Positions 4,321-47,300 are shown, counted from the stretch's first letter. The stretch is DNA of 64,000 nt from Magallana gigas (GCF_963853765.1 NC_088861.1:1116001-1180000), one strand, 5' to 3'. A program made the numbers and translations. The notes: generated by a model not told the origin, from the sequence alone.

Positions 4321-4604
4321 TAAAAATTACGGAAGAATTTGAAACACAAAAAGTGCGCTTTCAAGTTTATACCCGTGAAGGCTTTAAAAAGACATGGAGC
4401 AACGATTTCCCATCTGAAGACTTAAGTGTAAGAACAATTTTATTTTGTGAAGTGATAATTATTTACATTTTTAAGTCAATTTTAAAACTAAAAAATGATA
4501 AAAATGATACAAACCATACGTATAATTTACGATTTGTTCACGTTGCAGTATTGCATGAATCTAAAGAACATGAATTTTTCATCTTATGAATGACAAATTG
4601 CATA

Positions 4605-7600
4605 ATGGCTGATTTCGTTGGACGTGTAAAAGAAATCCAAGACATCACTAAGAGAGTGATTTCTCAATCAAGCACATCAACAGTTGTCATAGTGTACGGA
4701 CTTAGAGCAGTAGGAAAGTCTTCCTTAGTTCGTCAAATTTGCCACAGGATCCAGGATTTTGAAGTGGAATGGGTGGATCTAAAAAACGTAGGCGAGGGAA
4801 TCAGAATTTTGGAACCCCTCGCATTATCAATTTTAAAAGAAAGCCTAAGCTTATTACGCCATGAGGACATTCATGAAGTTTTCGACGGTCTGGTTAATAG
4901 AATTTTAACCACACTCAAAAACTCTCAAAAGAAACATCTCATTGTCTTTGACAACATGGAAGACGTTGTGGAGAGCGAACTATCTGTAGACATGGAAAAG
5001 GTGATTTACTCGCTTGCTAGTCTAAAGAACACTCGAATACTGGCCACATCGACAACAAAACTCCCACTTGCTCAACATCCCGATATCTTTGAAATGACAT
5101 TGGGTCCATTGTCGTTAAAAGACTCACAAGACTTACTCTGCAAACTTTGTCCGTCTTTAGAAAAGGACCAAAAATTCTACAAAATTGTCGACTTATGTGA
5201 AGGCTTACCACTTGTTCTTCAGATGACCGCAGCCGAAATTGACGCAGGGGACTTAACTGTGGAAGAGATTATATATCTGCTGAGCCAATGTCGACTGAAA
5301 CTTTTGAGTCAGGAGTTTTATCCAAGTACAGAGAGACTGGGTAAAAAAAATGCATTTTTAACGTCATTTTTGCATATTTACTAAAAAATTTGTAAAGAGG
5401 GCTGGGAGTTAGTGGTCTTTTTAAAACTGTATTAATTTTCTCGAGACGAATCTTTTCAATAGTTTAAGGCAAGAATATCATGTCTCAAAATGTTTAGCTC
5501 GATCTGATGGGCACTTTGTTGACCGTGCATCCTCCTTAAAACGTTTGTCACACAGCTAATTCTGTTTACAGCTCCAGTCTATCTTGCATTCCTTCACCGC
5601 ATGTCTAAACCACTACAGGAGAAGTTGTCTATGATTAATTATATTCCAGGGACATTTGACGAAAAAGAGGTATTGGGAATTATGGGTAAATATCAGTGTT
5701 AAGAATGTAGTAACCTATATGGGAACAATGAAGCCATGGTTTTGAATTTCATTTTATTTAAGAGGGCTTGATGATTGAGTCTATATCAGACTCTATCAAT
5801 TTCCATATAAAGAAGAGCTCTGTAATAGACAGAGCACAATTTTAGATTTAAAAGCAAAAAATTAATTGATTTTTTATGCTGTATAAAATCCATAACTTTA
5901 AAATCATATCAAAACATCTAAGGAAGATCTGATGGTTATTTTGGTGACAATAAAGTTTCCTTAAACATTATCAAGGATACAATTTAAAATTAATGTGTTC
6001 ACTATTGATCTAAGAAAGTCTTGGTTGTGTACAGCTCATATTAATTAGAGTCGTGCTCATTAAATGACCTCAAAGCTTTATCAATGACAACACATTATAT
6101 AATGTTGAAATAGAACTAAACAAGCTCTTATTGTTCACTGAAATCGTCAGTCAATTGATTTTGTTCACTCTAGGTCCAGAGAGCACAAATACTGAACATT
6201 TGAGAAGCGCAATGAATCGCCATGTTATCCAAAACTATGGTGTTCACCAAAGATTTAATATCCATGGAATTCTACGAGACTGTATATCTGAATACATGTT
6301 GATTAAGGACTTACCTTGTGAGTTATTAAATCAGTCTGTTTTTAATACATTTAAAATTAAAATTGGACCACGATGTGATGTGCGTGACCCAAAAACAAAT
6401 GGACTTCTACAACAACATTTTTCAACGTCTTTATAACTGTACATCAAATACATACATTGTATTTTTTTCAATTGCAGTAGTGCGTGGCAGATTTTGCAGA
6501 ATCTTTTCGGAAATCCTTCAAGAGCTCGAGAATAAATCGTTTACACCCGACTACCAGAGGGCGCTTTGTCAACTAAATATGGAACAACAGAACTTCAATA
6601 AACTTCTGACCGATGTTCTTCACTGTACCAGTGATACATACCACATTTTTGTCAACATTGCTTTCTTCCAGTTTAATTTGACCACTCCAGCTTTCTTATT
6701 TAACTCTCCTGACTCATACGGTAGGTAATCCTCAGTCTCAAGCCTCTATTTAGTAAATGGATTGAAAATCTGCCGCAATTTCACTGTGTTTTATATTGTT
6801 TAAGAGATGGGAATGATGTTCTTCAAAGAATGTCTACGCCTTACCCAACAACACAAGAATAAATACGACTCATCCAAAGTCCTTAGTGGTTTAGGAAGTG
6901 TTATTACGAACATAAAAGTAAGATAAATTCGATTGGATTTATTTGCTTGTTTTACTAATAAAAACCTTAATTGAAAAAACAATTAAGAATAAGCTAATTT
7001 ATTGCAAAAACTTGATTTAAACTATGCATCAAGTTGGTAATTTAAGACAGGTGCTGGATATGAGGCAACAAATTTACAATACAGTTTTGGGGGGATAGAA
7101 CATATACAGCAATTCATATACAGGACACTTTTACTCATAAACATCTTCCAGAATCAATAAGAAAACATTTATATAACTATAAATCTTAGTAATGCTTTTT
7201 TATTATAAAACATGTTTGCTCTTTTGTTCTATTAGGGGGACTATATCCTCGGAGAACACCACTATAGGAACGCGTTAAGAATCAGACAGGGTGGCCAAAC
7301 AGTGAGGGACTGTTCATTGGCTTTCCTTTATCAAAGTCTGGGTTGGAACTTGGGATGCCAGGGGAAATCACAAGAAGCTATCGTGTAAGGTTAAGCGGCT
7401 TTATATGTCAAAACCAAAGCAACAAAATACGATGGCGAAAAACAGAACACATTTCTACTGTTGAGAGATAAAGCAATGCCAGTATATTATGGTTACATGC
7501 TTGCTCAATTTATATACTAGTAGTTGGTTCACGTCTGCTTGATTAATAAATAAATAAAAAATAAATTTTCAAATTAGAATATGCCCACCCAGTTGTGATT

Positions 7601-8934
7601 AAAATGCAAAAAATAAATAAAATAAAATAAAATAAAATAAAAACTAGCATCTGTTGAACAACAACTTTTGTTTTAATTTTCTTTTTAACAAAATTTAATT
7701 AAATGCCGGATTTGTAAGATGTGAATATAGTCTTGCTAAATTATTTCATGGCATGATTATGTATTTTTGTATTTCTTATGAGCATACTGTGCTGATCTTG
7801 AAATTCAATATCACGTAATGAACAATTCATTGAATTTATATCAATGTGACGAAATGAAGTTTCTTCTGTCATTATTATATTTTCCAAGAGCATACTGTGC
7901 TGATCTTAAAATTTAACTTCATTATGAAATTTCTTCCGTCATTCGTTATTATATTTTCAGATTTCTTGAAAAAGCCCTAACAATTGAAATAGAACTGGGG
8001 ATGTCTTTAGAAAATCTCATCCTAAACACACTTCAATCCCTTGCCTTATTTCATCTAGATCTAGGTAACCTGTATTTTCGATCCACAAATGAATAAAAAA
8101 GAATATTTAACCTATGATTTTGTTTTACTAATGATAATTAAGAGGCCATATTAAAACGCTTGGTTGATTCTTTTAGATCACATGGACATAGGCGAAAAAT
8201 ATCAACTGGAGGCTTTACGACGCAGACGACAAGCTATTGGGACGGATATGCACCCTATTCTTGGTGCTATGTTGAATAATGTTGGTGAAATGTATCAAAA
8301 GAAGGGGCACATTTCCCAGGCAGAACAATATTTTAGACGTGGGCTTGAAATCAAAACACAAACAAACGCAGCATGGAAAAGCATAGCGTTATCTGAGGTG
8401 AACGTTGCAAACATATTGACTGAATCTGGAAGACCCGACGAAGCGCTGGAAGTCTTGGACAGCAGCATGAAACGGGCGGGGAAATTCCAAAATATTTATG
8501 AGGATATTCGGTCTCTTATAAGCGAGTGCTTTGGAAAAGCTTTTATGGAGAAAAGAATGCACAAAGAAGCTGTTGGGCATTTTCGGAAAGCTGTTCGTCG
8601 TCATGGTTGCAGCCAGTCACGTGATTACGGTGTCCTTAATTCGCAGTGTCTATTAGCCGAATGTTTAATTGGTCTTAAAAAACACGAAGAGGCCATAGAT
8701 TTGATTAATTCTGCACTTCGACAAAAAGATGCAGCAATTCGACACAAACCGTCTACGCTGAATATTCTTCGTTGTTATAGGATTCTTCGAAATGCACAGT
8801 CAGCCATAGGTAAATATTCAGATGCACACATATCGCACGAGCAAGGCTGTCGTGAATATGAGCGACTAAAAGAATGTTTTTATAAAGAAGAAGGCATGGA
8901 GAAAGTTCGGATAGAATGGATTGACCATACATAA
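4605..8934 (+). CDS. STAND (NB-ARC-like) NTPase-TPR protein, NLR-like, copy 1 (subfamily A, soluble), ~786 aa
   Basis: Exons 4605-5340, 5572-5685, 6174-6317, 6478-6720, 6805-6917, 7236-7384, 7961-8064, 8177-8934; all GT-AG, total 2361 nt, open frame. Motifs: FVGRVKEI, Walker A GLRAVGKS, Walker B LIVFDNMED, CEGLPL, winged-helix FNIHGILRDC, TPRs (MLNNVGEMYQKKGHISQAEQYFRRGLEIK). Confidence 0.92.
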
Positions 8935-11364: not shown

Positions 11365-14300
11365 ATGGATGATTTCGTTGGACGTGTAAAAGAAATTCAA
11401 GACATCACTAACAGTCTGATTTCTCGATCAAACACATCAACAGTTGTCATAGTGTACGGACTTAGAGCAATAGGGAAGTCTTCAATAGTTCGTCAAATTT
11501 GCCACAGGATCCAGGATTTTGAAGTGGAATGGGTGGATCTAAAAAACGTAGGTGAGGGAATCAAAATTTTGGAACCCCTCGCATTATCAATTTTAAAAGA
11601 AAGTCTAAGCTTATTAGGCAATGAGGACATTCATGAAGTTTTTGACGGTGTGGTTAAGAGAATTTTAACCACACTCAAAAACTCTCAAACGAAACATCTC
11701 ATTGTCTTTGACAACATGGAAGACGTTATGGAGAGCGAACTATCTGTATACATGGAAAATGTAATTTACTCGCTTGCTAGTCTAAAGAACATCCGAATAC
11801 TGGCCACATCGACAACAAAACTCCCACTTGCCCAACATCCCAATATCTTTGAAATGACACTGGGTCCATTGTCGTTAAAAGACTCACAAGACTTACTCTG
11901 CAAACTTTGTCCGTTTTTAGAAAAGAACCAAAAATTCTACAAAATTGTCGATCTATGTGAAGGCTTACCACTTGTTCTTCAAATGACTGCAGCCGAAATT
12001 GACGCAGGAGACTTAACTGTGGAAGAGATTACATATCTGCTGAGTCAATGTCGACTGAAACTTTTAAGTCAGGAGTTTTATCCAAGCACAGAGAGACTGG
12101 GTAAAAAAAATATAGGCATTTGTTATCTTCATTTTGGTATTTTAACTTAAAATTTATAAAGAGNNNNNNNNNNNNNNNNNNNNNNNNNNNNNNNNNNNNN
12201 NNNNNNNNNNNNNNNNNNNNNNNNNNNNNNNNNNNNNNNNNNNNNNNNNNNNNNNNNNNNNNNNNNNNNNNNNNNNNNNNNNNNNNNNNNNNNNNNNNNN
12301 NNNNNNNNNNNNNNNCTATTCGAAGCTTATATCTTTTGTAATAGTTTGTGGCAAGAATATCAGGTTTAAGGTGGTATGGGACATCTGTCATATTAATGTG
12401 GATTAAAGTGCATTATAATTTAAATACTTTCACCGGTTTAGAATTTTCAAATTTACAATATCTAACCAAAAAAAAAATTGTAAAACCCACAGTGGGATTC
12501 GAACTCCATGACTTAGTTACAGATTCGTAGTAAACCCTCTAACTCACTGCGCTACGCTGTTAGATGACAATATTGGGAAAGAAACTACTTATATAACTGC
12601 ACTTAATTTTATTGTTTATTTCGATAAACAATACGTCACGACATGGAAGTGTCCCATAACACCTTAAAATGTTTAGGTCGATCTGATAGGTACCTTGTTG
12701 ACCGTGCATCATCCTTAAAACGTTTGTCATTCAACTGATTCTGTTTACAGCTCCAGTCTATCTTGCATTCCTTCACCGCATGTCTAAACCACTACAAGAG
12801 AAGTTGTCTATCATTAATTACATTCCAGGAACATTTGATGAAAAAGAGGCATTGGAAATGATGGGTAAATATCATATTTTGTATGTGTTAAGAATGTAGT
12901 AACCTATACGGGAACAATGAAGCCATGGTTTGACTTTCATTCTAAAAGATTTTATCATTTACGAGGGCTGAATGATTGAGTCTATTTCAGACTCTATCAA
13001 TTTCCTTATAAAGAAGAGCTCTGCTTTGTAGAAAGATAAAGAAGAATATTAAACTTCATAGCAAAAAAGTATTTAATTTTTCTTTGCTTTAATTTTTTCT
13101 TTTGCGTTAATTTATTGACCACAAACTTTCCCTAAGCATTATTAAGGATACAACTTTGTTCACTCTAGGTCCAGAGAACTCAAATCACGAGTATTTGAGA
13201 AGGGCAGTAAATCGCCATGTTATCCAAAAATACGATTTTCACAAAAGATTCAATATCCATGGAATTCTTCGAGACTGTATATCTGAATACATGTTGATTA
13301 AGGACTTACCTTGTGAGTTAATGAATTAGTCTGTATATAAATCATTTAAAATTCAAATTGGACCACGATTTGATGTGCGTGAGCCAAAACAAATGGACTT
13401 CTTTAACATTTATGTACGTCTTTATAACTGTACTTCAAATACATGTACATACATTGTAATTGCAGTAGTACGTGGCAGATTTTGCAGAATCTTTTCGAAA
13501 ATCCTTCAAGAGCTCGAGAATAAATCGTTTACATCTGACTACCAGTGGGCGCTTTGTCAACTTAACCTGGAACAACAAAACTTCAATAAACTTCTGACCG
13601 ATGTTTTCCACTGTACCAGTGATACATATCAAGTTTTTGTCAACATCGCCTCCTTCCAGTTTAATACGACATCTCCAACTTTCTTATTTAACTCTCCGGA
13701 CTCCTACGGTAAATGACCGTCAGTCTCAAAGCTCTATTAAGTAGGTTGATTGAAAATCTGCTGCCAAACTCACAGTATTTTATATTGTTTAAGAGATGGG
13801 AATGATGTTCTACAAAGAATGTCTACGCCTTACCCAACAACACAAGAATGATTACGACTCATCCAAAGTCCTTAGTGGTTTAGGAAGTGTAATTACCAAC
13901 ATAAAAGTAAGATTTGAAGAATAAGCTATTGCACAACTAATTTGATTTAAACTATGCCATAAGAACTCTTTTCTTTTACTTGGACAGAAATCAATATTGT
14001 TTATAATAACTTAAAAATCTGAATATAAATACATTAGAAATTAATGACAGGCGCTGAACATGAAAAAGCATTTGGTGACAAACAGATACCGGTATATTAA
14101 CATTAACAGGTGTATGTATGACAATACATTTACAATATAGTTTATTGGAAAGAGAACATATACAGCAATTCATATACAGGACAATTTCACTTATACAGAT
14201 CTACTAGAATCATTAAAAACATTATTAACGTTAGTATATGAATCTAAATAACGCTTATTCGTAATTGAATACATATTTATGTTCTTTTATTCTGTTAGGG

Positions 14301-15930
14301 GGACTATATCCTCGGAGAACGTCACTATAGGAACGCCTTAAGAATCAGACAGAATGGCCCGGCAGTGAAGGACTGTTCGTTGGCTTTCCTTTATCAAAGT
14401 CTGGGTTGGAATTTGGGATGCCAGGGGAAATCACAAGAAGCTATCGTGTAAGGTTAAGCGGTTTTAGAGGTCAAAACCAAAGCAACAAAATACGATGTCG
14501 AAAAACAGAACTAGTTTCTACTGTTGAGTGATTATATACCGGTATTTGAATTGTAAAATATGGTTACATACAAGCTCATTTCATTGAGTTGGTTCATTTC
14601 TATTTGATCAATAAATAAATTAAAATAAATTTTAAAATTAGAATATGTCAACCCAATTGTAATTAAAATGTAAGAATTTCTTAGACAAATAAACACTCAC
14701 TAAGCCTCTGCTAAACGACAACTTTTGTTTTACAGAACCCAGTTTCTATACATTGCTGTACACGAACTTTTCACAAACGCCCCCTGTATAAAAATGATGC
14801 CACTTGTTGAAAACAATAACATCGAGTATATATATATATATATTTTCTAGTATATATTATTCTATTTCCCAAGAGCATACTGTGCTGATATTAAAATTTA
14901 ACTTCATTATGAAATTTCTTCCGCCATTCGTTATTATATTTTCAGATTTCTTGAAAAAGCCTTAACAATTGAGATAGAATTGGGGATGCATTTAGAAAAA
15001 CTTATCCTAAGCACACTTCAATCCCTTGCGCTATTTCATCTAGATCTCGGTAAGCTGTATTTTCATTTCTACATATGAATGAGGAAAAATATTCAATCTC
15101 TGATTTTTCTCTACAAATGGTAATCAATAGGCCATATTAAAACGATTGGTTGATTCTTTTTAGATCACATGGACATAGGCGAAAAATATCAATTGGAGGC
15201 CTTACGACGCAGACGACAAGCTATCGGGACGGACATGCACCCTATTCTTGGTGCTATGTTGAATAATGTTGGTGAAATGTATCAGAAGAAGGGGCACCAT
15301 TCCCAGGCAGAATACTATTTTAGACGTGGGCTCGATATTAAAACACAAACAAACGCTGCATGGAAAAGCATAGCGTTATCTGAGGTAAATGTTGCAAACC
15401 TATTGACTGAAACTGGAAGACCGGACGAAGCACTCGAAGTCTTGGACAGAAGCATGAAACGGGCGGGGGAATTCCAAAATATATATCAAGATATTCGGTC
15501 TCTTATAAACGAGTGTTTTGGAAGAGCCTTTATGGCGAAAAAAATGTATAAAGAAGCTGTCAGACATTTTCGGGAAGCTGTTCGTCGTCATGGAGACAGC
15601 CAGTCACGTGATTACGGTGTCCTTAGTTTGCAATGTCGATTAGCCGATTGTTTAATTTGCCTCGGAAAACACGAAGAGGCCATAGATTTGATTACATCTG
15701 CACTGCGACAAAAAGATGCAGCAATTAGACACAAACCTACAACACTTACTATTCTTAGTTGTTACCGGATTCTTAAAAATTCACAGTTAGCCATAGGTAA
15801 ATTTTCAGATGCACACATATCGCACGAGCAAGGATGTCGTGAATATGAGCGACTAAAGGATTTATTTGAAGGCTTGGGTAACAAAGAAGGACTGCAGAAA
15901 GTTCGAACAGAATGGACTAACCAAAGATGA
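11365..15930 (+). CDS. STAND (NB-ARC-like) NTPase-TPR protein, NLR-like, copy 2 (subfamily A, soluble), ~789 aa
   Basis: Exons 11365-12100, 12751-12864, 13169-13312, 13466-13708, 13794-13906, 14299-14447, 14946-15049, 15164-15930. Exons 1-7 have the same lengths as in copy 1; total 2370 nt, open frame. Walker A GLRAIGKS, LIVFDNMED, CEGLPL, IHGILRDC. Intron 1 contains the N gap. Confidence 0.9.
12164..12315. other. Assembly gap (152 N) inside intron 1 of STAND copy 2
   Basis: Run of N in the sequence. Confidence 0.99.
12366..12667. mobile_element. Non-autonomous DNA transposon (MITE) with TTAA target duplication and GG...CC termini (Kolobok-type), carrying a tRNA-derived segment
   Basis: TTAA(12366-69)-ggtggtatgggaca ... 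tgtcccataacacc-TTAA(12664-67). The homologous site in copy 1 intron 1 (gcaagaatatcatgtctcaaaatgtttag, ~5469-5497) is empty. An internal antisense tRNA-like piece at ~12496-12578 has A-box tagcgcagtgag and B-box gttcgaatcc. Confidence 0.8.
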
Positions 15931-21863: not shown

Positions 21864-22621
21864 GTCTAAGGCTGCTTTATGACCCGGAGGCTTGCTTTAT
21901 AAAAAGTTCCCCGGCCTTGAATCTCGTTCATTTGTAAGGCATTTCAAAGTATAAAATTATGTTATTTTCATTTTAGTGTTTTATCAAATTATAAATAATT
22001 TCTACAGAAATGGTGCATTCGTGACCTTATCATCATCTGCTAATAGTACACCTACATTAATTTGATTTTTTTCAATCAATAACTTTAAGGGTGAATATTT
22101 TGGTTTTATTTTAATAAAGAATATTTTTTATGTATCTTTGAGGCATTTTCTAGAAACAATGTTTAAGAAAACTGTTCGTCATTTGAAGATTTCAATATTT
22201 TTTATACATTTTTACAAGGCCAGGTTTATAAAAAAAGAGTTATCTCTCGTTATTATGTGTAAGCTCTTATAACACGGCATCCCGCTAGGCGGCATTGAGA
22301 TTGTCAGAGTTTTAACCAGGGCAGACATTTTACGGAGAAATTAGGGAAAAATTGAATCAGTAAGCTACTTTTGAAGTTTTTCAAATTAATGAAGCCTTAA
22401 TTGTTTTATTTTAAGAAATGTTTTCTCAGAAAAATAATCAGCATGAAAATTTCATTGTAAGTGTTTTATTTTAGGAAACACGTCATGGTTATTGATCTAA
22501 TGCAATGTAAGTGAGGTTTAAGATGTGCATATCGTAACTCTACTTGTGTACATAGAGCACTTGACAAACAAATTCAAATTACGCAATCCTTATCAAGTAG
22601 TGTAATACGGTTTTCATTATA

Positions 22622-25600
22622 ATGGCTTCCTTTATCGGCCGATTATCTGAAATTCAGGCCCTGACGGACACATTTCAGGAGCATAAAGTGGTTGTAATTC
22701 GAGGATTCAAAGGGATTGGAAAATCAGCACTTGCAAGGGAGTTTTGTAAACATTTTCAACGGCCGTTTTACTGGATTGACCTAAGGAATGTTACAATCGC
22801 CAATGAAATTCTGCAAACATTAGTTCGTGTTTTCTTGCAAGAAGCAATTGTATTGGACGATCCAAAATCCTTACTTCAGTTGATTTGTACAAATATTTCA
22901 GGAAGAAGATATCACTTAGTTATTGCATTTGACAATGCAGAGGATGTTGTTAAAGACGCCGATTGCGATTTGTTTGTTGAAATTCTACGTTCACTTTCAA
23001 ACTTGAACAATACAAGCACAGTGGTGACAACCACTGTGAAAATACCAGTCCAAAATGATCAAATCGGCGACTTTTTCTTACAAGAACTGTGTTTTGAGGA
23101 TTCATTTGATCTTTTGAAGAGCGTATGTCCAACACTGACAGACACGAAAAAGATTTCTGCAATTATAAATCTCTGCGAAGGTATTCCGTTGGCATTGCTT
23201 TTGGCAGGTGGAGAAATTGGACCATTGGACGTAGATGAAGTTATCTATCTTCTTAGTCATTACAGACTGAAAGTTTTAAGCTCAGAATGCTATCCAAAAG
23301 AAGAGCAAATAGGTAAGAATCATCAATATTCTTAAGTATTCGAAACAGTGAGAAAATTATTTTCAAAAATCACATTTACTTCACTACAGTGTATTCGGTA
23401 AATGCATACAAAATGGTTATTCGGGAAATGCTTACAATGCTTACGTAAGTCATTTTAATTGTAGAGCCGATATACAAAGGTTTTTTAGACAGACTTCCAA
23501 AGGCTTTGGAAGAAAAGCTGACTGATTTGAATTACATCCCGGGCTCGTTTAATTTAGAGGAAGCTATATCAGTATTAGGTATAAATAGTGAATGGGAAAG
23601 GGCGAAAAAAATTGTGTGGATTTTATTTGAAATACTTTTGTTTTTTAAATTCCTTTGTGTGTGATTTAGATTCAGCAGAAGACGAAGCTAAGGATATAGT
23701 GCAAACGTTTTTTGATCGTCACTTGATCTCGCAAATCTCGGATGACAGACTTGATATCCATGGAATAATAAGAGATTGCTTGAAGGAATATTTTAAAATC
23801 AAGAATATCAAAGGTTTTTCTTATAGTTGAAAATAATACATGATATTACAATGAAAAAGTATAGCCTGTGTAACCTTATTTTATTAGATTCAACTCAAAT
23901 TCAATTGAATGAAAAGTAAAATAAGAAACTTACTAAATGTCTGAATTAGTAGTATAATTAATTACTTCAATAAAAAGTAAGACTGTTTTACTGAAATGTT
24001 TTCCTCAAATGACATGTTCATCAGTCATTAAGAAATCAATCTTTCAATAATTAATTATAAGGTTATTAATCTTTTTCTCTGCAGAAGTTCGCGCTCGCTT
24101 TTGCAAAACATTTTCAGCCATACTGAAACAAATTGAAAAGAAAACTACCACTCAAGAATATGCTGACGCCATATGTACACTTAATTTGGAATATCAAAAC
24201 TTCCAGAAGCTTTTCACTGACGTCATATACTGCACCGAGGACACATATCACGTGTTCATTGATTTAGCAGCAACGACAGTAGCAGGAGGTTCCATAATCT
24301 TTACTACCATGGCAACGTATGGTAAATGTTAATTCTAGAATCCCTGAAAATTATGAGTGACTTATTCTAATCCGTTTTTGTTCGTCTTGTGTTCAACATT
24401 TAAACATTTTTAAATCAACTGTAAATATATATATTCCAAAAAATGTCCATAGGTCCGAGATTAGTTTTTCATCCCACAGAATGGACATATGTTGGCCTTG
24501 ATTTGATTTTTAAAGAAATACTGCATTTCTTTTAAGAAGAACGGTGTCAGGTTAACCTGTTGACACTGTTGTAAATAGGTTTTTTTTTTATAAACCAACA
24601 ATTAAATTAGACTTGAAATGTTTTTTGTTGACGTATTGAACAGTTTCAAGTATGTGTGACTATGTGTACTCCCAAGACCATGTGTACTCCCAAGACCATA
24701 TACTGATTTACCATTTTACCAACCATATATTTTACCGTTGGAAAGAGATTATATTTTTATTGAAACTTTAAAAATGTTAAATAAATACTACAGATACCAA
24801 CACTTACCTAAAATGTTTTGAATATAGAAGGTTGAAATGCTATGTAGCCACTTACAAATATATAAAATACAAAAAGCAAGGATGCATGTGTTTTCTTTAG
24901 GGTTGCAAACGCAAAGTACTAATTTTGACTAATTAGAAATTAATTCAGGGAGGGGGGTGCCAAGAATTTTTTTTTTAAACTTTTAAATGTGAATTTAATA
25001 TCGATCTGGAAAGCGTATCCCAATTTACATTCTAATGTATTTCAATCTACATTTTGATGTGATCGAGGCGATTGTTTGTAATTTTAAATGATGGAGTAAA
25101 AAAATATGATATGGTGTTATTCACCAACATTTTAATGTTTCCCTCTTGTATTGTAATCTGTTACATTTAAGGTTTATTGACATAAGTTGTTTTTGACAAA
25201 TGTACATGTACCGTCTTTCTCAAGCTTACCTGTAGCCATCCGAAAAGTTTATGGCTTAACCGGCCCCTGTACATTAAATTGAGTTTTGTTCATTATCAAT
25301 AATAATGGATAGCTTTTCCAGTCAATTATGTGAAAGAATAAACGCGTAAGCAACCTTTAGATTGTGATTAAAATTACAAAGCAACAAAACATACGAAAAC
25401 CAACATAACAAAAATGTTTGATTAAATACTATAGCCAATGACACCAGTTATCATACCGATGATGGTGATTTTTTCAGATCTAGGAATTCAATTCTACGAG
25501 AATTGTCTGAAAAAGGCAATTGAATTCAAAGAGGAATTGGACGAGGCCAAAGTTTTAACTGGATATGGCAAAATTTTGACGAACATTAAAGTAATACAAT

Positions 25601-27219
25601 CTTACATGTATGGTTGTATGGAAGTAAAGCGTATTTTGTTTCTCTTTTCACACAACTTCATATCAAATATAAAAACTTCTATATACTGTTTTACTTGTTT
25701 GTAAAGGGCGATTGTGTAGAAGCAGAAAAGAAATTTCAAGAAGCTATGGACATAAGAAAACGATTCCCAAATAAGAGAGACTATTTTCTTGCTTTTCTCT
25801 GTCAAAGTTACGGATGGAATCAGGGAGCACAGGGACAATTTGTAAACGCTATAAAGTGAGGATTAAACTTGTATCCTAGAATAAAACTTAAGTAGTAATC
25901 AATTAATTTCTTTTAAATACAGTTTTTATAATAAAAAATAATCAGAACGCAGATGTAAAAGATAATACATTTCAAGATCAATTCTATTTTTGATAACTTC
26001 TACTGAACAAAGTTTTTCTAATTAAGATATCAAAGTTTGGGTATAATTGGATGTTCAAATGTAAAGTTTACGCAACAAAAAAATAATTTTGTAATTTTAA
26101 GAATATTGAAAGAGGCTTTTGAGGTGGAACAAGAGCTTGGGATGCACTACGAAACCCTGATTCTGCAGACTATGCAATCTCTTGCAATCTTTTACAATTT
26201 TTCTGGTAAGACAAGTTATGCACTTTTAAATTTTGATATCTTATATTTGTGATATATTTTGCACATGATATTTAATTTTTCGTGCCTATTTAGGTCATAC
26301 TGAAAAAGGAGAGCCATTGCAACTAGAGGTTCTTAAGCGTAGACTTCATGTCATTGAAACAGAATATCATCCAATTATTGGGTCTATAATGAACAATATG
26401 GGTGTGCTATACGAAAGAAAGGAAGATTTCGCCAAAGCTGCTGAATACTACAGAAAGGGACTTGCCATAAAAGAGCAGACCAATGCACCCATCAAGGCTA
26501 TTATGATATCCGAAAGTAATGTTGCAAGAATTTTACTTGAACTCAATCAGAATGAGGAGGCAATTGAATTAGTAGAAAATGGTTTCAAACGGCTGGAAGA
26601 TATTCCAGGTCTGTTCACAGACACAAGATCATTACTTTTGGAGACACTTGGTAAAGCTCACATAAAAATGGGAAACTTTCGAGAAGCCGCCGTGGCTTTG
26701 AAAAGAGCAATTTCTTGTAGATGCAAAGGTGCTCCAAATGATAATTCCATTTTAAACCTAGTGTGTCTGTATGCAGAAAGTCTCCTTGCATTGTCAGAAT
26801 ATGAAAAGGCTGCACAGGAGATACAAAAAGGTTTCCGTCTAAATGAAACCTTGATCATTAATTATCCAACAAATACAAATATCGCTCTTGCGTATGAAAA
26901 GCTATTGGAAGCTTATTTCGGGTTGAAGAGAAGAGAAGATTTAGACAGAACATATGAAGCAGGCAGGAACGAATTTTTTCGCTTAATTAGAGTCTATGAA
27001 GAAATGAACAACTTCAACAAACGAGAAGATTTGTTAACTCGTTTTCAACGGTTCAAAACACGATACTTGGGAATGTTAAAAGAATTAACTAACGAAATCC
27101 ATGAAGAAAGCCAAGGTACAATAAATGACACGGTCATTTTAATTACCTTAATTGGATTAAAGTTTGTATGTCTTGCATTTTTTTGCATGTGTATCAAATC
27201 AAAAGGAAAAACAAATTAG
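22622..27219 (+). CDS. STAND (NB-ARC-like) NTPase-TPR protein with C-terminal tail anchor, copy 3 (subfamily B), ~825 aa
   Basis: Exons 22622-23312, 23465-23578, 23670-23813, 24085-24321, 25478-25590, 25707-25855, 26102-26205, 26294-27219; total 2478 nt, open frame, same intron phases as copies 1/2. FIGRLSEI, GFKGIGKS, VIAFDNAED, CEGIPL, LDIHGIIRDC, TPRs, C-terminal VILITLIGLKFVCLAFFCMCI-KSKGKTN. Confidence 0.92.
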
Positions 27220-27864
27220 GCATTAATTATTTCTAATTATTTGACTTATATTATAGCTATTAATCTCTGTTTGACAAAACATACAGGATTATCGGGGTTA
27301 TAAAACAGTTTGTGCAAATTGTACTTTCCAGAAAAATGATTAAAAAAGTGATAGTTATATACAATGATTATTAAAAGAGACCTATTGAACAAACTTCTGA
27401 GCGTGTTTATTGAATATTTAAAAACTAACATGGTATTTACTTTGAATGTAAAGTACTAATTGAGAACAATTTTCTTCTCCATACATAACGGCGTATAACC
27501 AATTTTATTTAAAGATTGTGTCCCCTTTCAAAGAATACCGTATGGGGTGCCTAATGGGAAGCGACTTGCTCAGAGCTACCGAAGTTATTTAATTGGATTA
27601 GCCATGTATATGAGAGCTACAATTTTGTAATGTTTTGTTCAGTATGCTAGAAAATATTACAGTTCTAAAGGAAATATATATTACCGAATGTATTATCTGT
27701 ACTTTTACAGAATGGACAGATATTAAGAAAGATTATATTTAAAAAAGTACCATTTAATACATTATCGAAAATGTTCGAGATGAGGTGATAACGACCGTAA
27801 GTAATTTCCTTAATAGGGGATCCGCATGTCACCGACTATGAATATGAATATGAAATTATTTTGG

Positions 27865-27886
27865 CTATCTATCTATCAATCTATCA

Positions 27887-27950
<64 letters not shown>
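27865..27950. repeat. (CTAT)n microsatellite
   Basis: About 21 tandem ctat units with two caat variants. Confidence 0.95.
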
Positions 27951-27951
<1 letters not shown>

Positions 27952-29678
27952 CATGTATATGTTATAAATAAAATAATTATATGAATATGAAGATACACTT
28001 TACCTCCAATTGTCCATTTAATTGCAATCACTGTACGCATATTTTTCCGTAAAAATGGTTCTGAAATGCAAGCTGAATCAAACAATACAAATAGAAAACT
28101 CTGGCTCTTAATTGTTACAATATTTTCAAAATGAAGTAAAACCTACACAAACCCATATAAAGAGGTACAAATTAACCTATAAATGCATTTATTGCATGTG
28201 TCTTTTAATTAAAGTTACTGAATGACATAATGGAAAGTTTATGCATGTTTATGATTAGATGATTAAAAGCGTTTGCATGATACCGAAAAAGTCATTCTTT
28301 AAGGCAAAAGTAAAATTTACAATTCTGCTCTATAAAATGCGTGTTAAGGTCAGTTGTCAATTTTAATGATTTTAAATAACTGATTTTGTTTTAATTATAA
28401 AGACCTTTCATTCAAAGTAATAAATAAAATGTGTCATTTCTCCATAATTTTCTGGGTTTTTTTTTTGTAAACACCGTTTGAGCCATTCACTGTTTATCGA
28501 GAAGCAAGGAAATGATAAAGTTTAAGATGAAAGAACAGAGAAATCAGAGAATTAATGCACAATGTCATCACATGAACACATACACACATTTTCTGCAAAT
28601 ATTGAGGAAATGTGATCCTTGAGATGATTTCCGGCAACGTTAGAATTAATAGATTAAGTTTAACATGTTATTGTAAAATGAAAACTATAATATATAGTGC
28701 GTTTTCCGAAAATATGTCAAGCATGTTACGAAATACAGTAAAACATTTTAAGGACGTACAATCACATAATTGATAAAATCATGTTTTGTTCTAGAATCCT
28801 AACACCGAAGAAAATTAAACGTTATTGACAACAACATTATAATATTTCTTTTGATTGCTTTTAGAAATTTAAGTATATATGATTTGACAGTTTGTAACTT
28901 TCAAAGTATCATGTAGCTATGGTAGGTAAAAGTTTATAGCAAAATTCATGAAGGTCACAGAGCAGCCACGCGTGTGTGCGTGTGCATATGTCTTCGGGCT
29001 TTCACGGTGTCAGGGGGTCGAAGTTTGTGGCCCCCGCAAACTTGAGCCAGTTGATTATTTTTAATCACAAAAATAAACTTCCACTCCCTTTTCTCATAGT
29101 AATAATTTGAACAATTTCATTTTCAAAAAAAAAAATCAACTAAGTTTCTGTAATGAATAATGTTAACTTCTTTATTTCTACGAGTCATCAAAGTGTGTTT
29201 ATTAATACATTTCACTGTGTTTTTAACCTCTTATAATTAATTAAACATGCAACCATGCATTTACATTATGATTATTTTTCTTTGGCATTCAATCCCTTAA
29301 TTCATCGATATAATTGGTAAAATAATGCAAATCATCGAATATAACATCAATACGCACATACGCACTGGTATAGGTAAAATGCTGACGCAACATTTTGGGG
29401 CAGAAAAATGGGTAGAAAACGTTGTCTTATGACTTAATACATCAGTTCATCTTAATTAAAAGTGAACTGCTTTATCTGAATTCCGGTCACAGACCACATG
29501 GCTATAAAAGACGTTTCAAAACACAACTCATTGTTTCAAAATGCAGTAACATGTTTAAAGTGTTTAAAATTATTAGGTATGCTCTAAAAATAACTTGGGG
29601 AATTTACAAGTGGCAATCGAATTAAATACCCAATATCTACATGTAGTTCAAAGTCAAACAAATATCGTCGTCTTGAAA

Positions 29679-32600
29679 ATGGCGTCTTTTGTTGGTCGAT
29701 CTACCGAAATTAAGGCTCTCATAAACAAAATACAACACCATAAATTGGTTGTTATTCGAGGATTTAAAGGAATTGGAAAATCGGCAATTGCGAGGGAGGT
29801 TTGTAAGCATATCCAACAACCATTTTATTGGATTGACCTTCGGAATATTACGATCGCCGATGAAATGCTTCAATCATTGGTTCGTGTTTTCATTCAAGAA
29901 GCAGTTGTCCTGGATGATAAACAATCACTGCTTAGAGCTATTTGTGAAAACATCGTAGGAAAAGGACATCAGATATTAATTGTTTTTGATAATGCAGAAG
30001 ATCTTGTTAAAGACAATGATTGTGGTCTGTTTGTTGAAATCTTACTTTCACTTTCAAACTTGATCAATACAAACATATTGGTGACAACGACTGTAAAAGT
30101 ACCTGTTCAAAAGGATAAAATTGTCGATTTCTTCGTTAAAGAATTATGTTTTGAGGATGCATTTGATCTTTTGAAGAGCGTTTGTCCAACACTGACAGAC
30201 ATAGAAAAGATTTCTGCAATTATAAATCTTTGCGAAGGCATTCCGTTAGCATTGCTTTTGGCAGGTGGAGAAATTGGACCATTGGACGTAGATGAAGTTA
30301 TATATCTTCTTAGTCATTACAGACTGAAGATTCTAAGCTCAGAATGTTATCCAAAAGAAGAACAAATCGGTGAGAAGTTTAACATTTCTGTACCTTGTAA
30401 TGGAGTATCTAAATTATTGAAAATATTTCCATGAGCTTATAAAACCTTCTTTCATGCCCGTTTTCACGTTCACTATTTTTGCTCTATTTCCTCGATACAC
30501 TGCATATAAACGTCACTTTCCTTGTAGAACCCTTGTATAAAAGCTTTTTAGACAGACTTCCAACGGCTTTGGCCGAAAAATTCGCAGTTCTGAATTACAT
30601 TCCGGGCTCGTTTGATTTAAAGGAAGCTTTATCAGTATTAGGTACCAAAGTAGTGGATGATTTTTTTTCTTCGAATTTTTAATATCAAATTCATATTTGC
30701 ATGCGAAAACATCTATTGTTGTCATTTAGGACCTTCGGATGATTTAGAAAAAGAAGATACAATGGAAACATTTTTTCATCGCCATTTGATCTCTCAGACC
30801 ACAGGGGACAGATTTGATATCCATGGAATTTTGAGAGATTGCTTAAAGGAATACTTTAAAATCAAGGATATTAAGGGTTAGTATGTAGTAGTAGGGCTAA
30901 CAAATAAACAACAATTCAAAGATTTGTATATAAACTAGAGATGCATATACGACTATTCGTCAGTATATTAAATTAGTCAATTAAGTCAGTAATAAATTTT
31001 CTTTTTGCAGAAGTCCGAGCTCGCTTTTGCAAAACCTTTTCAGCCATACTGAAACAAATTGAAAAAGAAACCACAACTAAAGAATATGCTGATGCCTTGT
31101 GTAAACTTAATGTGGAGTATCAAAACTTCAAGAAGCTTTTTACTGACGTCATTTACTGCACCGAGGACACATATCACGTGTTTATTGATTTAGCGGCAAC
31201 TACAGTAGCAGGAGGGGCCATCATGTTTACAACAATGGCAACGTATGGTACATGCCGGTCTTTTACCGTATTTCGTCTGTTTTACATTAAATACTTTTCG
31301 TACAAAAATTAGTTTATACATCTGTAGGATTAAATGTATGAAATGCCGTGTGTTTAATTTCATTTGTCGTATTATTGAATACTTTCCCAACATTTTTTGT
31401 TTCAGAAATTGGTATTCGGTTTTATGAAAATTGTCTGAGGAAAGCTATAGAATTCAAAGAGGATTTGGATGAAGCAAAGGTGTTGACTGGATATGGCAAG
31501 ATCTTGACAAACATAAAAGTACAGAACCTATATATTATAATCACTAGAATAACATATATGTATTTTATTGAATATTGTCTTTATCTACAGCAGTTATATT
31601 TTAAGATTTTTCATAATTGTGGAGAAATTTCTTTTTGTCATGAAAGTAATTTTATCTTTATTAAAGGGAGATTGTGTTCAAGCAGAAAGTAAATTTCAGC
31701 GAGCTATGGACATAAGAAGACGACATCCAAATAAGAGGGACTATCATTTTGCTTTTCTCTGTCAAAGTTATGGCTGGAATCAGGGAGCGCAGGGGAAATA
31801 TGTTAACGCTTTGAAGTAAGACTTAACATTTTTTTCTTACATAAAGCCACCTACTTTATTTTAATCAAATGAAAATACATGTCCATTTCAAGTTAAAAAC
31901 TGGTTTTGTCGTCCTTATGTCGGCCTATTGTGAGCTGATCAGGAATAAGTCATACGATCATATTTAATCTGATTTGTATGTTTTTATTACAAGAATTTTG
32001 GGAGAAGCCTTTAAAGTAGAACAGGAGCTGGGGATGCACTACGAAAACCTTATTCTGCAGACCATGCAATCTCTTGCAATCTTTTACAATTTCTCTGGTG
32101 AGACAACAAATTCATATCAAGTTCTTGTATTTTTTCTTCATATTTTATACGCATGTTTAATATTTCCTTATCATTCTAGGACATATTGACAAAGGAGAAC
32201 CGCTGCAACTAGAAGTTTTGAAACGAAGACTTCATGTCATTGGGACAGAAAATCATCCAATTATAGGGTCTATAATGAACAATATGGGTGTGCTATACGA
32301 AAGAAAGGAAGATTTCGCCAAAGCTGCTGAATACTACAGAAAGGGACTTGCCATAAAAGAGCAGACCAATGCACCCATCAAGGCAATAATGATTTCCGCA
32401 CATAATGTCGCGAGGAGTTTACTTAAACTTAAACAAAATGATGAGGCCATTGAATTGATACAGAATGGTTTTAAACGTCTTGAAGATTTCCCGGATCTCT
32501 TTAGCGATACAAGATCATTACTATGGGAAACAATGGGCACAGCTTACATGTCATTGGACAATTTCAAAGAAGCGTCATTGGCCTTTAAAAAGGCCATATA

Positions 32601-33084
32601 TCTTAGAACTCAAACTTCACCACATGATAATTCAATTTTAGGATTAGTGTGTTTGTATGCGAAAAGCCTCCTGGCAATGTCTGAATATACAAAGGTTATT
32701 AGAGAGGTGCAAAAAGGCATGCGTCTCAGCGAATCTATAAGAAAAAATACACCCACAAATCCGACAATTATTTTTACATATGAGAAATTAATGGAAGCTG
32801 AGTTTGCTTTAAAGAGAAGAAATGATCTAGAGAAAACATACATGGCAGGCAAGGACGAGTTTTTTCGCTTAATAAAAGTTTATGAAGAGTTGAAAAACTT
32901 TAACAAACGAGAAGATGTGTTATTACATTTCCAGCGTTTTAGAGCAAGATATTTGGAAATGTTAAGAGAACTAAACAACGAAATTCCCAACGAAATTGAC
33001 AGCGTCGTTTTGATATCCCTTCTTGGTTTAAAGATTGTGTGCATCACGTTTCTGTTTCTGTGCATGAAATCAAAAGAGAAATAA
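29679..33084 (+). CDS. STAND (NB-ARC-like) NTPase-TPR protein with C-terminal tail anchor, copy 4 (subfamily B), ~819 aa
   Basis: Exons 29679-30369, 30528-30641, 30730-30876, 31011-31247, 31406-31518, 31667-31815, 31994-32097, 32180-33084; total 2460 nt, open frame. FVGRSTEI, GFKGIGKS, LIVFDNAED, CEGIPL, FDIHGILRDC, C-terminal VVLISLLGLKIVCITFLFLCM-KSKEK. Confidence 0.92.
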
Positions 33085-33400
33085 ATGTTTTTATGCTTTA
33101 ATCATTGAACCGTTATGGTTAAAATATATTGATGAATCATATAATTTATCTGATTCTTTGGCAGATTCCTTTTTTGATAAGTAAATTGATTAAAAAAAGA
33201 ATCTAACGGTTGGATGAGGTGACGAGACATTGCATTATATTTACATTTTCCAGTATCTTTGCCTGTGATAACACTACGTATCGATTTTGTACTATATAAC
33301 CCATAATACAAATGACGCCAAAATGAGGCGCCAGCGGGGTTTGCTTATATATATTTATATATTTAATCGTGCGATGGCTTAAAATTATATAAATATAAGT

Positions 33401-44308: not shown

Positions 44309-47300
44309 TCACAGATTATCGTATGCAGACAAAGGACGTACGTCGGACTTCTTTTCATCGTTTTGCTTTATCTCCCTTGATTTTGGTCTGGACTTCCGAC
44401 CTGATACTGCACGCTTTGGGGTTAATTTTGGAGTAGACTTTTCTTTGTCTGACTCCTTCTTTGTGGGACGGTCCTTTTTCTGGGGAGAAACAGTTGCCTT
44501 GGTTTGTTCACCCGATGCTGTCTCACTTTCGTCTTCCTTGTCGTGTTCAATTGACATGTACCTTTGTCGAATGTAAACAAACGGTTTTGCTTTCTGTGGT
44601 TTCGGAGAATCTTTTTCTGGATCAGGTTCCGTTTTTGGCAATTGTTTTGGTTCTCTTCCTGTCGTTTTGGGTAGGTTTTTTACAGGGTCAGGACACTTTT
44701 TCTTTTTTGAAAAAAGCTTCTGCATGAAACTAACATTCGAATTCGCTTTTTTCTCAGTTGGTGTAGGTTTCTTTTCCGAATTACCTTCCGCCTTCTCCTG
44801 CAACTTTTGAGGAGAAGAAGGCGTTCTATTCGGATCAATCTTTAGAGAGGAAAAGTCCATTTTTGCGTCAGTCGAAATATTTGAACTTTCTGATTGACAC
44901 GAAATTACTGACGCTGTTAATTCAGACTCTGTAGAGGAGGTCATTGAGGTATTCAAAAGCACATTTCCTTTCGGAAATTTAGGATTTAAAACGGGCGTTT
45001 TATCCAAAGAGGTATTGCTTCCTTTGTGGACAGGAATACGGCTTGGAGATTTTTGTTGGGAATGTTTGCTTTTATATTTCTGATTTGGCACTGTTGCAAT
45101 TTTTCCTGGAGCAGAATTAAATCTTGACATCTTATTTCCAGCATGGGGACTCCCAATAGGCAAGGTCATACTTTCGTTTCCATCACACGATGTCTTTGAT
45201 TTTTCTGCAGGTTCATCTGAAGGAGATAATGTTTTCCCCTTCAATGTAGTTATCGGTTGTGGTTTTCTGTCTCTTTTTTGTGTTTTCCCAGCACTAGTTG
45301 ACTGTGCTAATAATTGTTGTACATTTCTCTGTCGTCCTTGTTCAGAAGTATCCGGCTGTTCATTCAAATTTTCTTTTGAAGATAACTGGTCGTTTGAAGT
45401 TTTCCATGGCACATCGGGCATGTTTTTTTGAGTTGGACTTTGTAATCTCTCAGACACTTTTTGTAATTTTGAAATACACGCAGCCATTTTACCTTCCGCA
45501 AGTGTCGTTGAATCTGTTAAAGTGTTAGCATCTGTTACTTCTATTCTCGGTGTCATTGTAAACTTGTTTGCAGTATCTGGAATTGGTTTGTTACCGAAAA
45601 CATTTTCAGCAATTTGTCGAGAACTACTAAAAGTACTTGTAGCTTTATCAGATTTTGCAATGTAAAATGTCATTGTTCCCTTTGAAAACAGATGACGAAT
45701 CGGCGTTGATGTTTCCTTTTCAAACGTTAGTTTGGGTTGTGTATTGGTACATACATCGACTAACTCTTTGCCTTCCTTATCTTTACGTTTTGAGTGTTTC
45801 CACACTTCGGGTTCATTTGGATCATGATCTTGTGTTTGCGGAATAGTAGTTACGAATGTTTGGGTGGCTATTTCAGTATCTGATGTATAGTCCATTGATG
45901 TGTAATCATCCACCATTTCTATATGGTCTTCAAAATCGTGAATAGATGGTTCCGATGATACAAGATCGAAGGCAGATTCTGGTATGAGGAAAAGTTCGTC
46001 GCCTTCAAGTTCACTCAAAAGTCCGATGTAAGGCAGAGACTCGGTTGAGGTGGCCATATCACAACATTCGATCGGTCTTTGATCAAACTCGCGTGAAGTA
46101 CCTATTGATTTGTCAAAAAGGTTAACCATTGACGTTTGTGTTGAGATTTCTGTAAACGTCATCGAAGACTGGCCAAATGACATAGCCATTGTTCCACGTT
46201 CCTGAACATCTGGAGGTGAGGGATTTGTGGCCATATCCACCCTTTTCACAAAGTCCTCTAAACTAACATTTGTTGACTTATGCACTGGGGTTAATACTCG
46301 TCCACCATACACATCGTTCAACGAATTGCAATGCGAGAGAGTGTCCGATGTACCTATGCCTGCATCCGAAAACAGTTTAACGTCAGTGTTGGTTTCTTTG
46401 GTTTCGGTAACCATCTCAACGAATGTCTGGGCGTCTTGGCATTTCAATCTTTCTGTTAAAGTTTCATTATCCTGGACAATAATCGTTGTTTCTGTGGTTG
46501 AATCTTTAAATTTGACTATTTCTGTGTGTGTCGCTTGGTCCATCAAAACCACCGGGTTTGTTTCAACACACGAATCAATAGTTGCTGGTCGAGGAGGTGA
46601 TATACCTGTGTTGACAAGAACAGGATTAAAAGTTTCAGTCCATTGGTCAGTACTTGTCACCTTAGTGGTGCTTGTTTCTTTATCAGAAAATTGCAAAGAA
46701 CAGGTTTCTGTACTCGATTCTACCATAGTTGGGCTTAGAGGAGGAAGCATCTCGGTCAAACTCGATTGACTAGAGAGTTTGTCAATGGATCCGCGGCTAT
46801 CTGAAGATCCTTTTCCTTTAAATAGCTTTAGCAAACCCCCATGCCACGATTTTCTGTTTTCGCTCGACCCTGTCTGATTTGGTTCCCATTGGTCAGTTTG
46901 AATGCAAGAGCTGGCAACATTTGTAGGCATCGTGAAAGTGTTTACATCTCTTTGATTTGGTGTAACTTGAAGGCCCTGGTCTGTTACAGACACAGGTGTC
47001 ATTTCGGTGCCACTGTCTATCGTTTCACAACTAACAGTGAAAGTTGATCTTTCTGTAGTTGACGGTGGATCCGTCCAAGTCTCAGCGGTAGTAAATGAAA
47101 TTGTTGGCATAGACGTTTCACTATCCATAAAGTTGATTTTAACAGTTGATGTACCTTTGTCAGTCTGCCCTGCATAATCCGTTCCTACATTTTTCGTAAT
47201 TTGAGTTACTTTTGGTGTTTGTGTATCCGATGTTCTGCTTTCTACTTTGGTTTGTATTTCAGAATCTCGAGTTCGAACCTGATATGTACACGTAACGGCA

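Follow-up and report, generated by a model that had tools for sequence, protein, structure and literature searches.

The 64,000-nucleotide stretch of Magallana (Crassostrea) gigas DNA analysed here (GCF_963853765.1 NC_088861.1:1116001-1180000; hereafter the window, with positions counted from its first letter) contains a tandem array of four + strand genes, all of which open with an NB-ARC exon and close with a TPR exon. Two of these genes, copies 3 and 4, probably encode tail-anchored STAND NTPases, for which the mitochondrial outer membrane and/or peroxisomes are the leading candidate address. Sequence, RNA and comparisons between species give good support to the reading of both proteins as tail-anchored STAND NTPases. 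The coding part of copy 3 (M. gigas LOC105348342) lies at 22622..27219 on the + strand and, with its exons joined at the splice joints seen in RNA, forms an intact open reading frame (ORF) of 2478 nt that specifies 825 amino acids. The product matches RefSeq XP_011456017.3 (P0167 in our protein set; annotated as "uncharacterized protein") with no residue differing. Copy 4 (29679..33084, + strand) was assembled by tblastn and splice-site search as a homology model of 819 amino acids in one intact ORF, and shares 76% amino acid identity with copy 3.

Both proteins end in the same kind of tail. Translation of 26902-27222 closes copy 3 with ...NDTVILITLIGLKFVCLAFFCMCIKSKGKTN and a stop codon, and translation of 32800-33087 closes copy 4 with ...IDSVVLISLLGLKIVCITFLFLCMKSKEK and a stop codon. 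The initial annotation, which had placed here a hydrophobic stretch of about 21 residues followed by a Lys-rich tip, is borne out by these translations in both coordinates and letters. In copy 3 the predicted transmembrane helix runs from V798 to I818 (VILITLIGLKFVCLAFFCMCI; 27133..27195, + strand); it comprises 21 residues with Lys807 at the centre, has a Kyte-Doolittle (KD) hydropathy of 2.59-2.68 and is helical in the AlphaFold2 (AF2) model. It is followed by the basic tip KSKGKTN (27196-27216, + strand; net charge +3) and the stop codon at 27217-27219. The copy 4 counterpart, V794-M814 (VVLISLLGLKIVCITFLFLCM; 33004..33066, + strand; KD 2.65-2.69), is followed by KSKEK (33067-33081, + strand; net charge +2) and a stop codon at 33082-33084. 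Ahead of the helix, alignment and the AF2 model place a linker (residues 771-797; 27052..27132, + strand), a helical extension that is absent from subfamily A, to which copies 1 and 2 belong. The AF2 model of the last exon draws the tail within the final long helix, with a confidence (pLDDT) of 55 at residues 261-270 of the model, a dip in the linker right before the transmembrane domain (TMD).

The tail stands apart from the rest of both proteins on two hydropathy scales. The maximum over 19 residues on the KD scale is 2.59 in copy 3 and 2.69 in copy 4, the next best segment reaching 1.83, and the summed Hessa energy over 19-21 residues (scale values entered by hand) is -1.9 to -2.6 kcal/mol for the tails against +3.3 or more elsewhere. 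In these scans the tail is the only transmembrane-like segment of copies 3 and 4. Since the N-terminus, MASFIGRLSEIQ..., is hydrophilic and runs directly into the P-loop, no signal peptide is predicted. The formal sequence features of tail-anchored (TA) proteins are thus present: a single C-terminal TMD with a short tip (3-7 residues, where TA proteins allow up to about 30) in all 10 sequences compared (see below) and, on hydropathy scales, neither a signal peptide nor another transmembrane segment. A final 19-residue window with a KD value of at least 2.4 occurs in 6 of the 1110 stop-free six-frame segments of the window (about 0.5%), a count that may include the two tails. Two other roles for such a C-terminus were considered and rejected. 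A glycosylphosphatidylinositol-anchor signal is ruled out by the absent signal peptide, the cytosolic NTPase body and the presence of a basic tip, and a monotopic hairpin or in-plane helix is less parsimonious than a single span, the arms being only 9-11 residues long, the Lys lying deepest and the helix not being amphipathic.

Copy 3 is transcribed through the tail. Three sets of RNA contigs and one stranded poly(A) raw-read run were mapped over 22300-27700, and contigs and raw reads define eight coding exons on the + strand with GT..AG joints (22622-23312, 23465-23578, 23670-23813, 24085-24321, 25478-25590, 25707-25855, 26102-26205 and 26294-27219). No splice joint falls anywhere inside the last exon, in contigs or in raw reads, and contigs X1 record 6 (26469-27700) and X3 record 12 (26497-27683) cross tail and stop unspliced, which shows exon 8 to be transcribed to the stop given in the initial annotation and gives a 3' untranslated region (UTR) on the + strand from 27220 at least to 27700. 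The stranded poly(A) reads are all oriented as a + strand mRNA predicts. Depth is zero in X1, X3 and X20 over the intron bin 25920-26100, indicating that DNA carry-over is small and is not the source of the 3' coverage. Contigs of 2.8-2.9 kb in independent public assemblies also encode the complete 825 residues, tail included; with a gene of 4.6 kb, contigs of this length can have come only from spliced mRNA. Among them, P0232 (825 amino acids with the tail, 3 differences) lies on a 2830-nt contig, and P0230 comes from a full-length transcript contig (L008) for 825 amino acids with the tail, whose exon-exon junctions were verified. Two minor isoforms were seen: one (23313-23669) skips exon 2 (114 nt, in frame) and occurs in run X5 only, and the other (24322-25706) lacks exon 5 (113 nt), with a frameshift as the expected result, and occurs in run X1 and in one X20 raw read. 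No isoform removing the tail alone was found among the copy 3 RNA joints. One RNA contig also carries a 5' UTR intron (22359-22475, GT..AG) ahead of the start codon, so the transcript starts before 22359. A short tandem repeat at 27826-27984, which reads LSIY repeatedly in one frame, lies in or just past the 3' UTR.

The tail is shared among oysters. Full-length relatives came from an exhaustive search of 1.84 billion representatives with the last exon, from a profile seeded with a full-length match and from cluster look-ups; an earlier word-index search with the last exon alone had returned only fragments of 175-276 amino acids, owing to its length window. The same tail plan is present in eight full-length proteins from four oyster genera, namely M. 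gigas copies 3 and 4, C. virginica LOC111103343 and LOC111103902, Ostrea edulis LOC130046267, Saccostrea echinata LOC133185331 and LOC133184984, and S. cucullata LOC134278901, and also in several transcript-derived (Logan) fragments from related oysters. Across 10 sequences the plan consists of 19-22 hydrophobic residues, with a grand average of hydropathy (GRAVY) of 1.85-2.52, and a tip of 3-7 residues that is basic in every member (net charge +1 to +5, mean +2.5). A Lys or Arg lies 10-11 residues ahead of the tip in nine of the 10, the remaining one having Gln (the P0001 cluster together with the full-length transcript-contig proteins P0230 and P0236). Three residues beyond this mid-helix basic residue there is mostly a Cys (two residues beyond it in one protein); the tail of C. 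virginica LOC111103343 is free of Cys. The GLK motif that the initial annotation had singled out as conserved is borne out for copies 3 and 4; in the wider oyster set the common element is the Lys/Arg at this position. Its suggestion that the Cys residues may be palmitoylated is weak and not supported: in copies 3 and 4 they lie mid-helix or in the C-terminal, luminal half, which in a tail-anchored topology faces away from the cytosol, and one member has none.

What is conserved in the tail is its physical chemistry and not its residues. In the more distant carriers the last-exon part is 41-55% identical to copy 3, and the tail residues vary widely. Between copies 3 and 4, at saturated synonymous sites, the ratio of nonsynonymous to synonymous rates (dN/dS) is 0.17 overall and 0.11 over TMD and tip, and all replacements in the TMD are conservative (hydrophobic-for-hydrophobic or Thr/Ser). 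The tail is under purifying selection.

A maximum-likelihood tree, from which the carriers' last 30 residues had been taken out beforehand, splits the oyster proteins into subfamily A (support 100/100), without tails, and subfamily B (93/91), with all carriers. Relatives from Pinctada, Mytilus and Haliotis are without the tail, and as far as seen the carriers are confined to Ostreidae and to this one oyster-only subfamily. The simplest history on the tree would have the tail gained once, close to the root of subfamily B and earlier than the divergence of the oyster genera, perhaps by a lengthening of the reading frame. Copies 1 and 2 end in the hydrophilic residues that the initial annotation had reported (...KVRIEWIDHT and ...KVRTEWTNQR, each followed by a stop), about 50 residues earlier in the alignment than copies 3 and 4, and no relic hydrophobic stretch was seen downstream of their stops in the three frames examined. 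S. cucullata LOC134278903 (P0179/P0012), a basal member of subfamily B, has the helical C-terminal extension and stops where linker and TMD would begin, a state that could be an intermediate or a secondary loss of the tail. The two tail genes of M. gigas group together (100/99), as do the two of C. virginica, a pattern to be expected from separate duplications as well as from gene conversion inside each array. The only non-oyster match with a hydrophobic C-terminus, P0106, is a TPR-CHAT protein and not a STAND NTPase, and has no bearing here.

By their domain content, copies 3 and 4 are STAND NTPases of the NB-ARC (AP-ATPase) clade. Pfam and motifs place the NB-ARC domain of copy 3 in exon 1 (22622..23312, + strand), starting at residue 1 and leaving no N-terminal effector domain; the Pfam match there is 35.8-38.7 bits, and NB-ARC (PF00931) scores 35.8-44.6 bits in P0167, P0008 and P0168, against a cut-off of 23.5. 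GFKGIGKS, VIAFDNAED and CEGIPLAL, as well as DIHGIIRD in exon 3, were read in the translation of copy 3 as its Walker A, Walker B-like, GLPL-type and MHD-like motifs. Exons 5-8 (25478..27051, + strand; about residues 400-770) encode a TPR region of the kinesin-light-chain (KLC)/LGN type, as indicated by an 85-bit TPR_12 match in Pfam, sequence matches to KLC1/2 in the PDB, and an AF2 model of the last exon (pLDDT 87.6) that Foldseek matches to KLC, LGN and CTPR structures. NACHT is below threshold (24.3 against a cut-off of 26.7) and appears in copy 4 only, and no LRR was matched by Pfam in these proteins, the repeats being TPRs. With neither NACHT nor LRR, the products are NLR-like STAND proteins and not NLRs in the strict sense. 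The Fis1 family is absent from the Pfam matches to P0167 at E <= 0.001.

To which membrane the tail would lead was judged from its charge and hydrophobicity. In mammals the mean tail charge of TA proteins is 6.0 for peroxisomes, 2.5 for those shared between peroxisomes and mitochondria, 1.1 for mitochondria only and 0.2 (0.21) for the endoplasmic reticulum (ER); FIS1 and MAVS fall in the shared class, and in the mitochondrial/peroxisomal class a tail of positive charge goes with a TMD of moderate hydrophobicity (Costello et al. 2017, PMC5450235). The mean of the oyster tips equals that of the shared class, by rules derived from mammals and yeast and not from molluscs. This mean, together with a basic tip in every member, makes mitochondria and peroxisomes the most likely address. 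The tail anchor of the initial annotation is borne out in its formal features. For a mitochondrial/peroxisomal code the evidence is divided: the tip charge fits, but the GRAVY of the TMD is high and not moderate, at 2.2-2.5 in nine of the 10 oyster sequences even with the buried Lys/Arg counted. It is this very hydrophobic helix that ranks the ER second. A tail anchor inserted into the ER by the GET/TRC40 or EMC route, so that the protein would face the cytosol from the ER or from membranes supplied by it and not from mitochondria or peroxisomes, is a possible alternative, if a doubtful one. A TMD with a GRAVY of 2.4 has been termed highly hydrophobic, raised hydrophobicity overrides tail charge and directs proteins to the ER, and the yeast ER tail-anchored proteins have a GRAVY above 1.75 (PMC5450235). 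This alternative has to contend with tips of +1 to +5 in all members, compared with the mammalian ER mean of +0.21, and with the central Lys/Arg, which reduces the effective hydrophobicity of the helix.

Several points weigh against tail-anchored STAND NTPases with this address and should be set beside the evidence for them. The whole GRAVY range of the oyster tails lies where mammalian TA proteins are sent to the ER despite a charged tail (PMC5450235), and the charge and hydrophobicity rules applied here are those of mammals and yeast, not of molluscs. The transmembrane assignment comes from hydropathy scales only and the putative membrane placement from sequence, and a Lys or Arg at the dead centre of a helix is costly for a plain anchor. 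The RNA evidence is that of copy 3, copy 4 being known as a homology model from DNA. Finally, two subfamily B models of S. cucullata, a long-branch basal paralogue and a partial model, are without the tail, indicating that it is not indispensable. Taking these points together, we consider that copies 3 and 4 are probably sensors fixed to an internal membrane, and estimate the chance that this membrane is the mitochondrial outer membrane and/or that of peroxisomes as a little short of even; ER-derived membranes receive a smaller but substantial share, and what is left goes to other sites or to no membrane at all.

A tail-anchored STAND NTPase of this kind would be built, in order, from an NB-ARC switch, a helical/winged-helix part with the MHD-like motif, a KLC-type TPR sensor, the linker, the transmembrane helix and a tip of 5-7 residues. 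With its helix at the very end of the chain and no signal peptide in front, it would be inserted post-translationally, with the NB-ARC-TPR body in the cytosol and only the tip across the membrane. A ligand on the TPR part may then lead to nucleotide exchange and to oligomerisation in the plane of the membrane, and the output could come from partners recruited to the resulting membrane patch. Because the N-terminus carries no effector domain, output would have to pass through such partners or through the helix itself, and one possible route is the helix face with its mid-membrane Lys/Arg-x-x-Cys. The fixed position of the intramembrane basic residue goes beyond what plain anchoring needs, suggesting an interface between helices or, with lower likelihood, a bundle that perturbs the membrane; output through such an interface, which we favour over the bundle, is speculative.

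A stronger version of this idea makes the helix the effector: oligomerised helices with clustered Lys/Arg and a stripe of Cys would form a leak or pore, or would pair with an acidic transmembrane residue of a partner. The missing N-terminal effector domain speaks for it, as does a tail (a basic residue 10-11 positions before the tip in nine of 10 sequences, a Cys at +3 in most) that is more specific than anchoring requires. We nevertheless consider it unlikely, since it is conjecture, with no homology to any pore-forming module, one variant has Gln for Lys (P0001 cluster, P0230, P0236), one member has no Cys, and known STAND systems carry their effectors N-terminally. Very improbable, in our view, is a tail that lies outside the membrane and, as an autoinhibitory or protein-protein helix, docks in the TPR groove or drives self-association. 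TPR grooves do bind peptides and helices, and in the AF2 model the tail prolongs the last helix, but 21 near-uniformly hydrophobic residues with no amphipathic pattern and a conserved basic tip are typical of a membrane span; in solution a stretch of this kind would aggregate, and its KD value of 2.6-2.7 far exceeds that of any other segment. That the tail is functionless read-through of AT-rich 3' sequence, which often encodes Phe, Leu, Ile and Val, or an annotation artefact can practically be dismissed: although it may well have arisen by read-through, given that subfamily A stops about 50 residues earlier, it has been kept across four genera at 41-55% identity with a dN/dS of about 0.1 at a saturated synonymous rate, it is transcribed, and its chance rate is about 0.5% per ORF end.

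The remaining members of the array are copy 1 (4590..8934, + strand) and copy 2 (11365..15930, + strand; M. gigas LOC105348319-like, 789 amino acids), both of subfamily A, with a hydrophilic C-terminus and no tail. The homology model of copy 4 has its eight exons on the + strand at 29679-30369, 30528-30641, 30730-30876, 31011-31247, 31406-31518, 31667-31815, 31994-32097 and 32180-33084. RefSeq lists these proteins as uncharacterised models only. Two older or automatic models, P0226 (C. angulata, 1138 amino acids) and P0229 (UniProt K1Q3M3, 1073 amino acids), end in the copy 4 tail and, being longer than one gene, probably fuse neighbouring copies. The names 'kinesin light chain 3', 'TTC28' and 'nephrocystin-3-like' on older models are misnomers driven by the TPRs. 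A run of N at about 12150-12300, right behind the first coding exon of copy 2, is an assembly gap or a masked stretch. Elsewhere in the window, the - strand carries an ORF of 1591 amino acids (44309-49084) whose head is of RING/B-box (TRIM-like) type and whose very long low-complexity tail is rich in Ser and Thr, and the + strand one of 402 amino acids (60845-62053) that is rich in Lys, Glu and Ser and lies in locally GC-richer surroundings.

Full-text literature searches returned no C-terminally anchored NB-ARC or NLR-like protein and no paper naming LOC105348342. The initial annotation had called the architecture unfamiliar among characterised NLRs, and for a C-terminal anchor this agrees with the literature searched; it has to be qualified in that the protein is of the NB-ARC-TPR type and that putative membrane-bound NLRs with N-terminal transmembrane segments have been reported in cnidarians. 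The latter are anthozoan NACHT-LRR proteins with three to four N-terminal transmembrane segments, and were the first NLRs to be put forward as membrane-bound (Yuen et al. 2014, PMC3879445). They resemble the oyster proteins in being immune-type STAND NTPases predicted at a membrane (PMC3879445), but their multi-span N-terminal module on a NACHT-LRR protein implies another topology and insertion route than the single C-terminal anchor of an NB-ARC-TPR protein. Similar in domain order are the animal STAND proteins with NB-ARC or NACHT followed by TPRs, from Hydra, corals, placozoans and amphioxus, which likewise place a P-loop switch ahead of the repeats, form tandem duplicates and lineage-specific families, and often have no LRR (PMC3879445, PMC6321704). 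The ones described so far either are soluble or have an effector such as a death-fold or TIR domain at the N-terminus, whereas the oyster proteins have no N-terminal domain and a C-terminal transmembrane tail.

Other likenesses concern the anchor. In Fis1 too, a cytosolic TPR domain is held by a C-terminal TMD with a short, Lys/Ser-rich tip (PMC5450235). Fis1 differs in being a protein of about 150 amino acids without an NTPase, while the oyster TPRs are of the KLC/LGN type. Its TMD is also rich in Gly and Ala and less hydrophobic. MAVS is an innate-immune signalling protein that, as proposed for the oyster proteins, is tethered by a basic-tipped tail anchor (on mitochondria, peroxisomes and mitochondria-associated membranes) and oligomerises on an organelle surface, but it is a CARD adaptor with neither NTPase nor repeat sensor and is unrelated to them in sequence. 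In C. elegans, CED-9, a tail-anchored Bcl-2 homologue, keeps the NB-ARC protein CED-4 on mitochondria. There, an NB-ARC protein is likewise brought to the outer membrane of an organelle by a tail anchor, the difference being that the anchor belongs to a partner, whereas in the oyster proteins it is fused to the NTPase.

Most sensors of the STAND/NLR type are soluble, and it is lipid modification, a partner or an N-terminal segment that brings them to a membrane. If the tail of copies 3 and 4 is a genuine tail anchor, the sensor would have a permanent place on one organelle surface, much as MAVS does in RNA sensing. Should the helix itself prove to be the effector, a single chain would combine a sensor with a C-terminal membrane effector, and the oligomer would permeabilise an organelle membrane or capture a partner with an acidic TMD. 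Within one array, the pairing of a soluble subfamily A with an anchored subfamily B offers a natural comparison, and the conserved intramembrane Lys/Arg provides a precise residue for mutation. The oyster proteins would thus represent a testable case of organelle-based surveillance in a mollusc, and in an aquaculture animal that suffers viral and bacterial mass mortalities.
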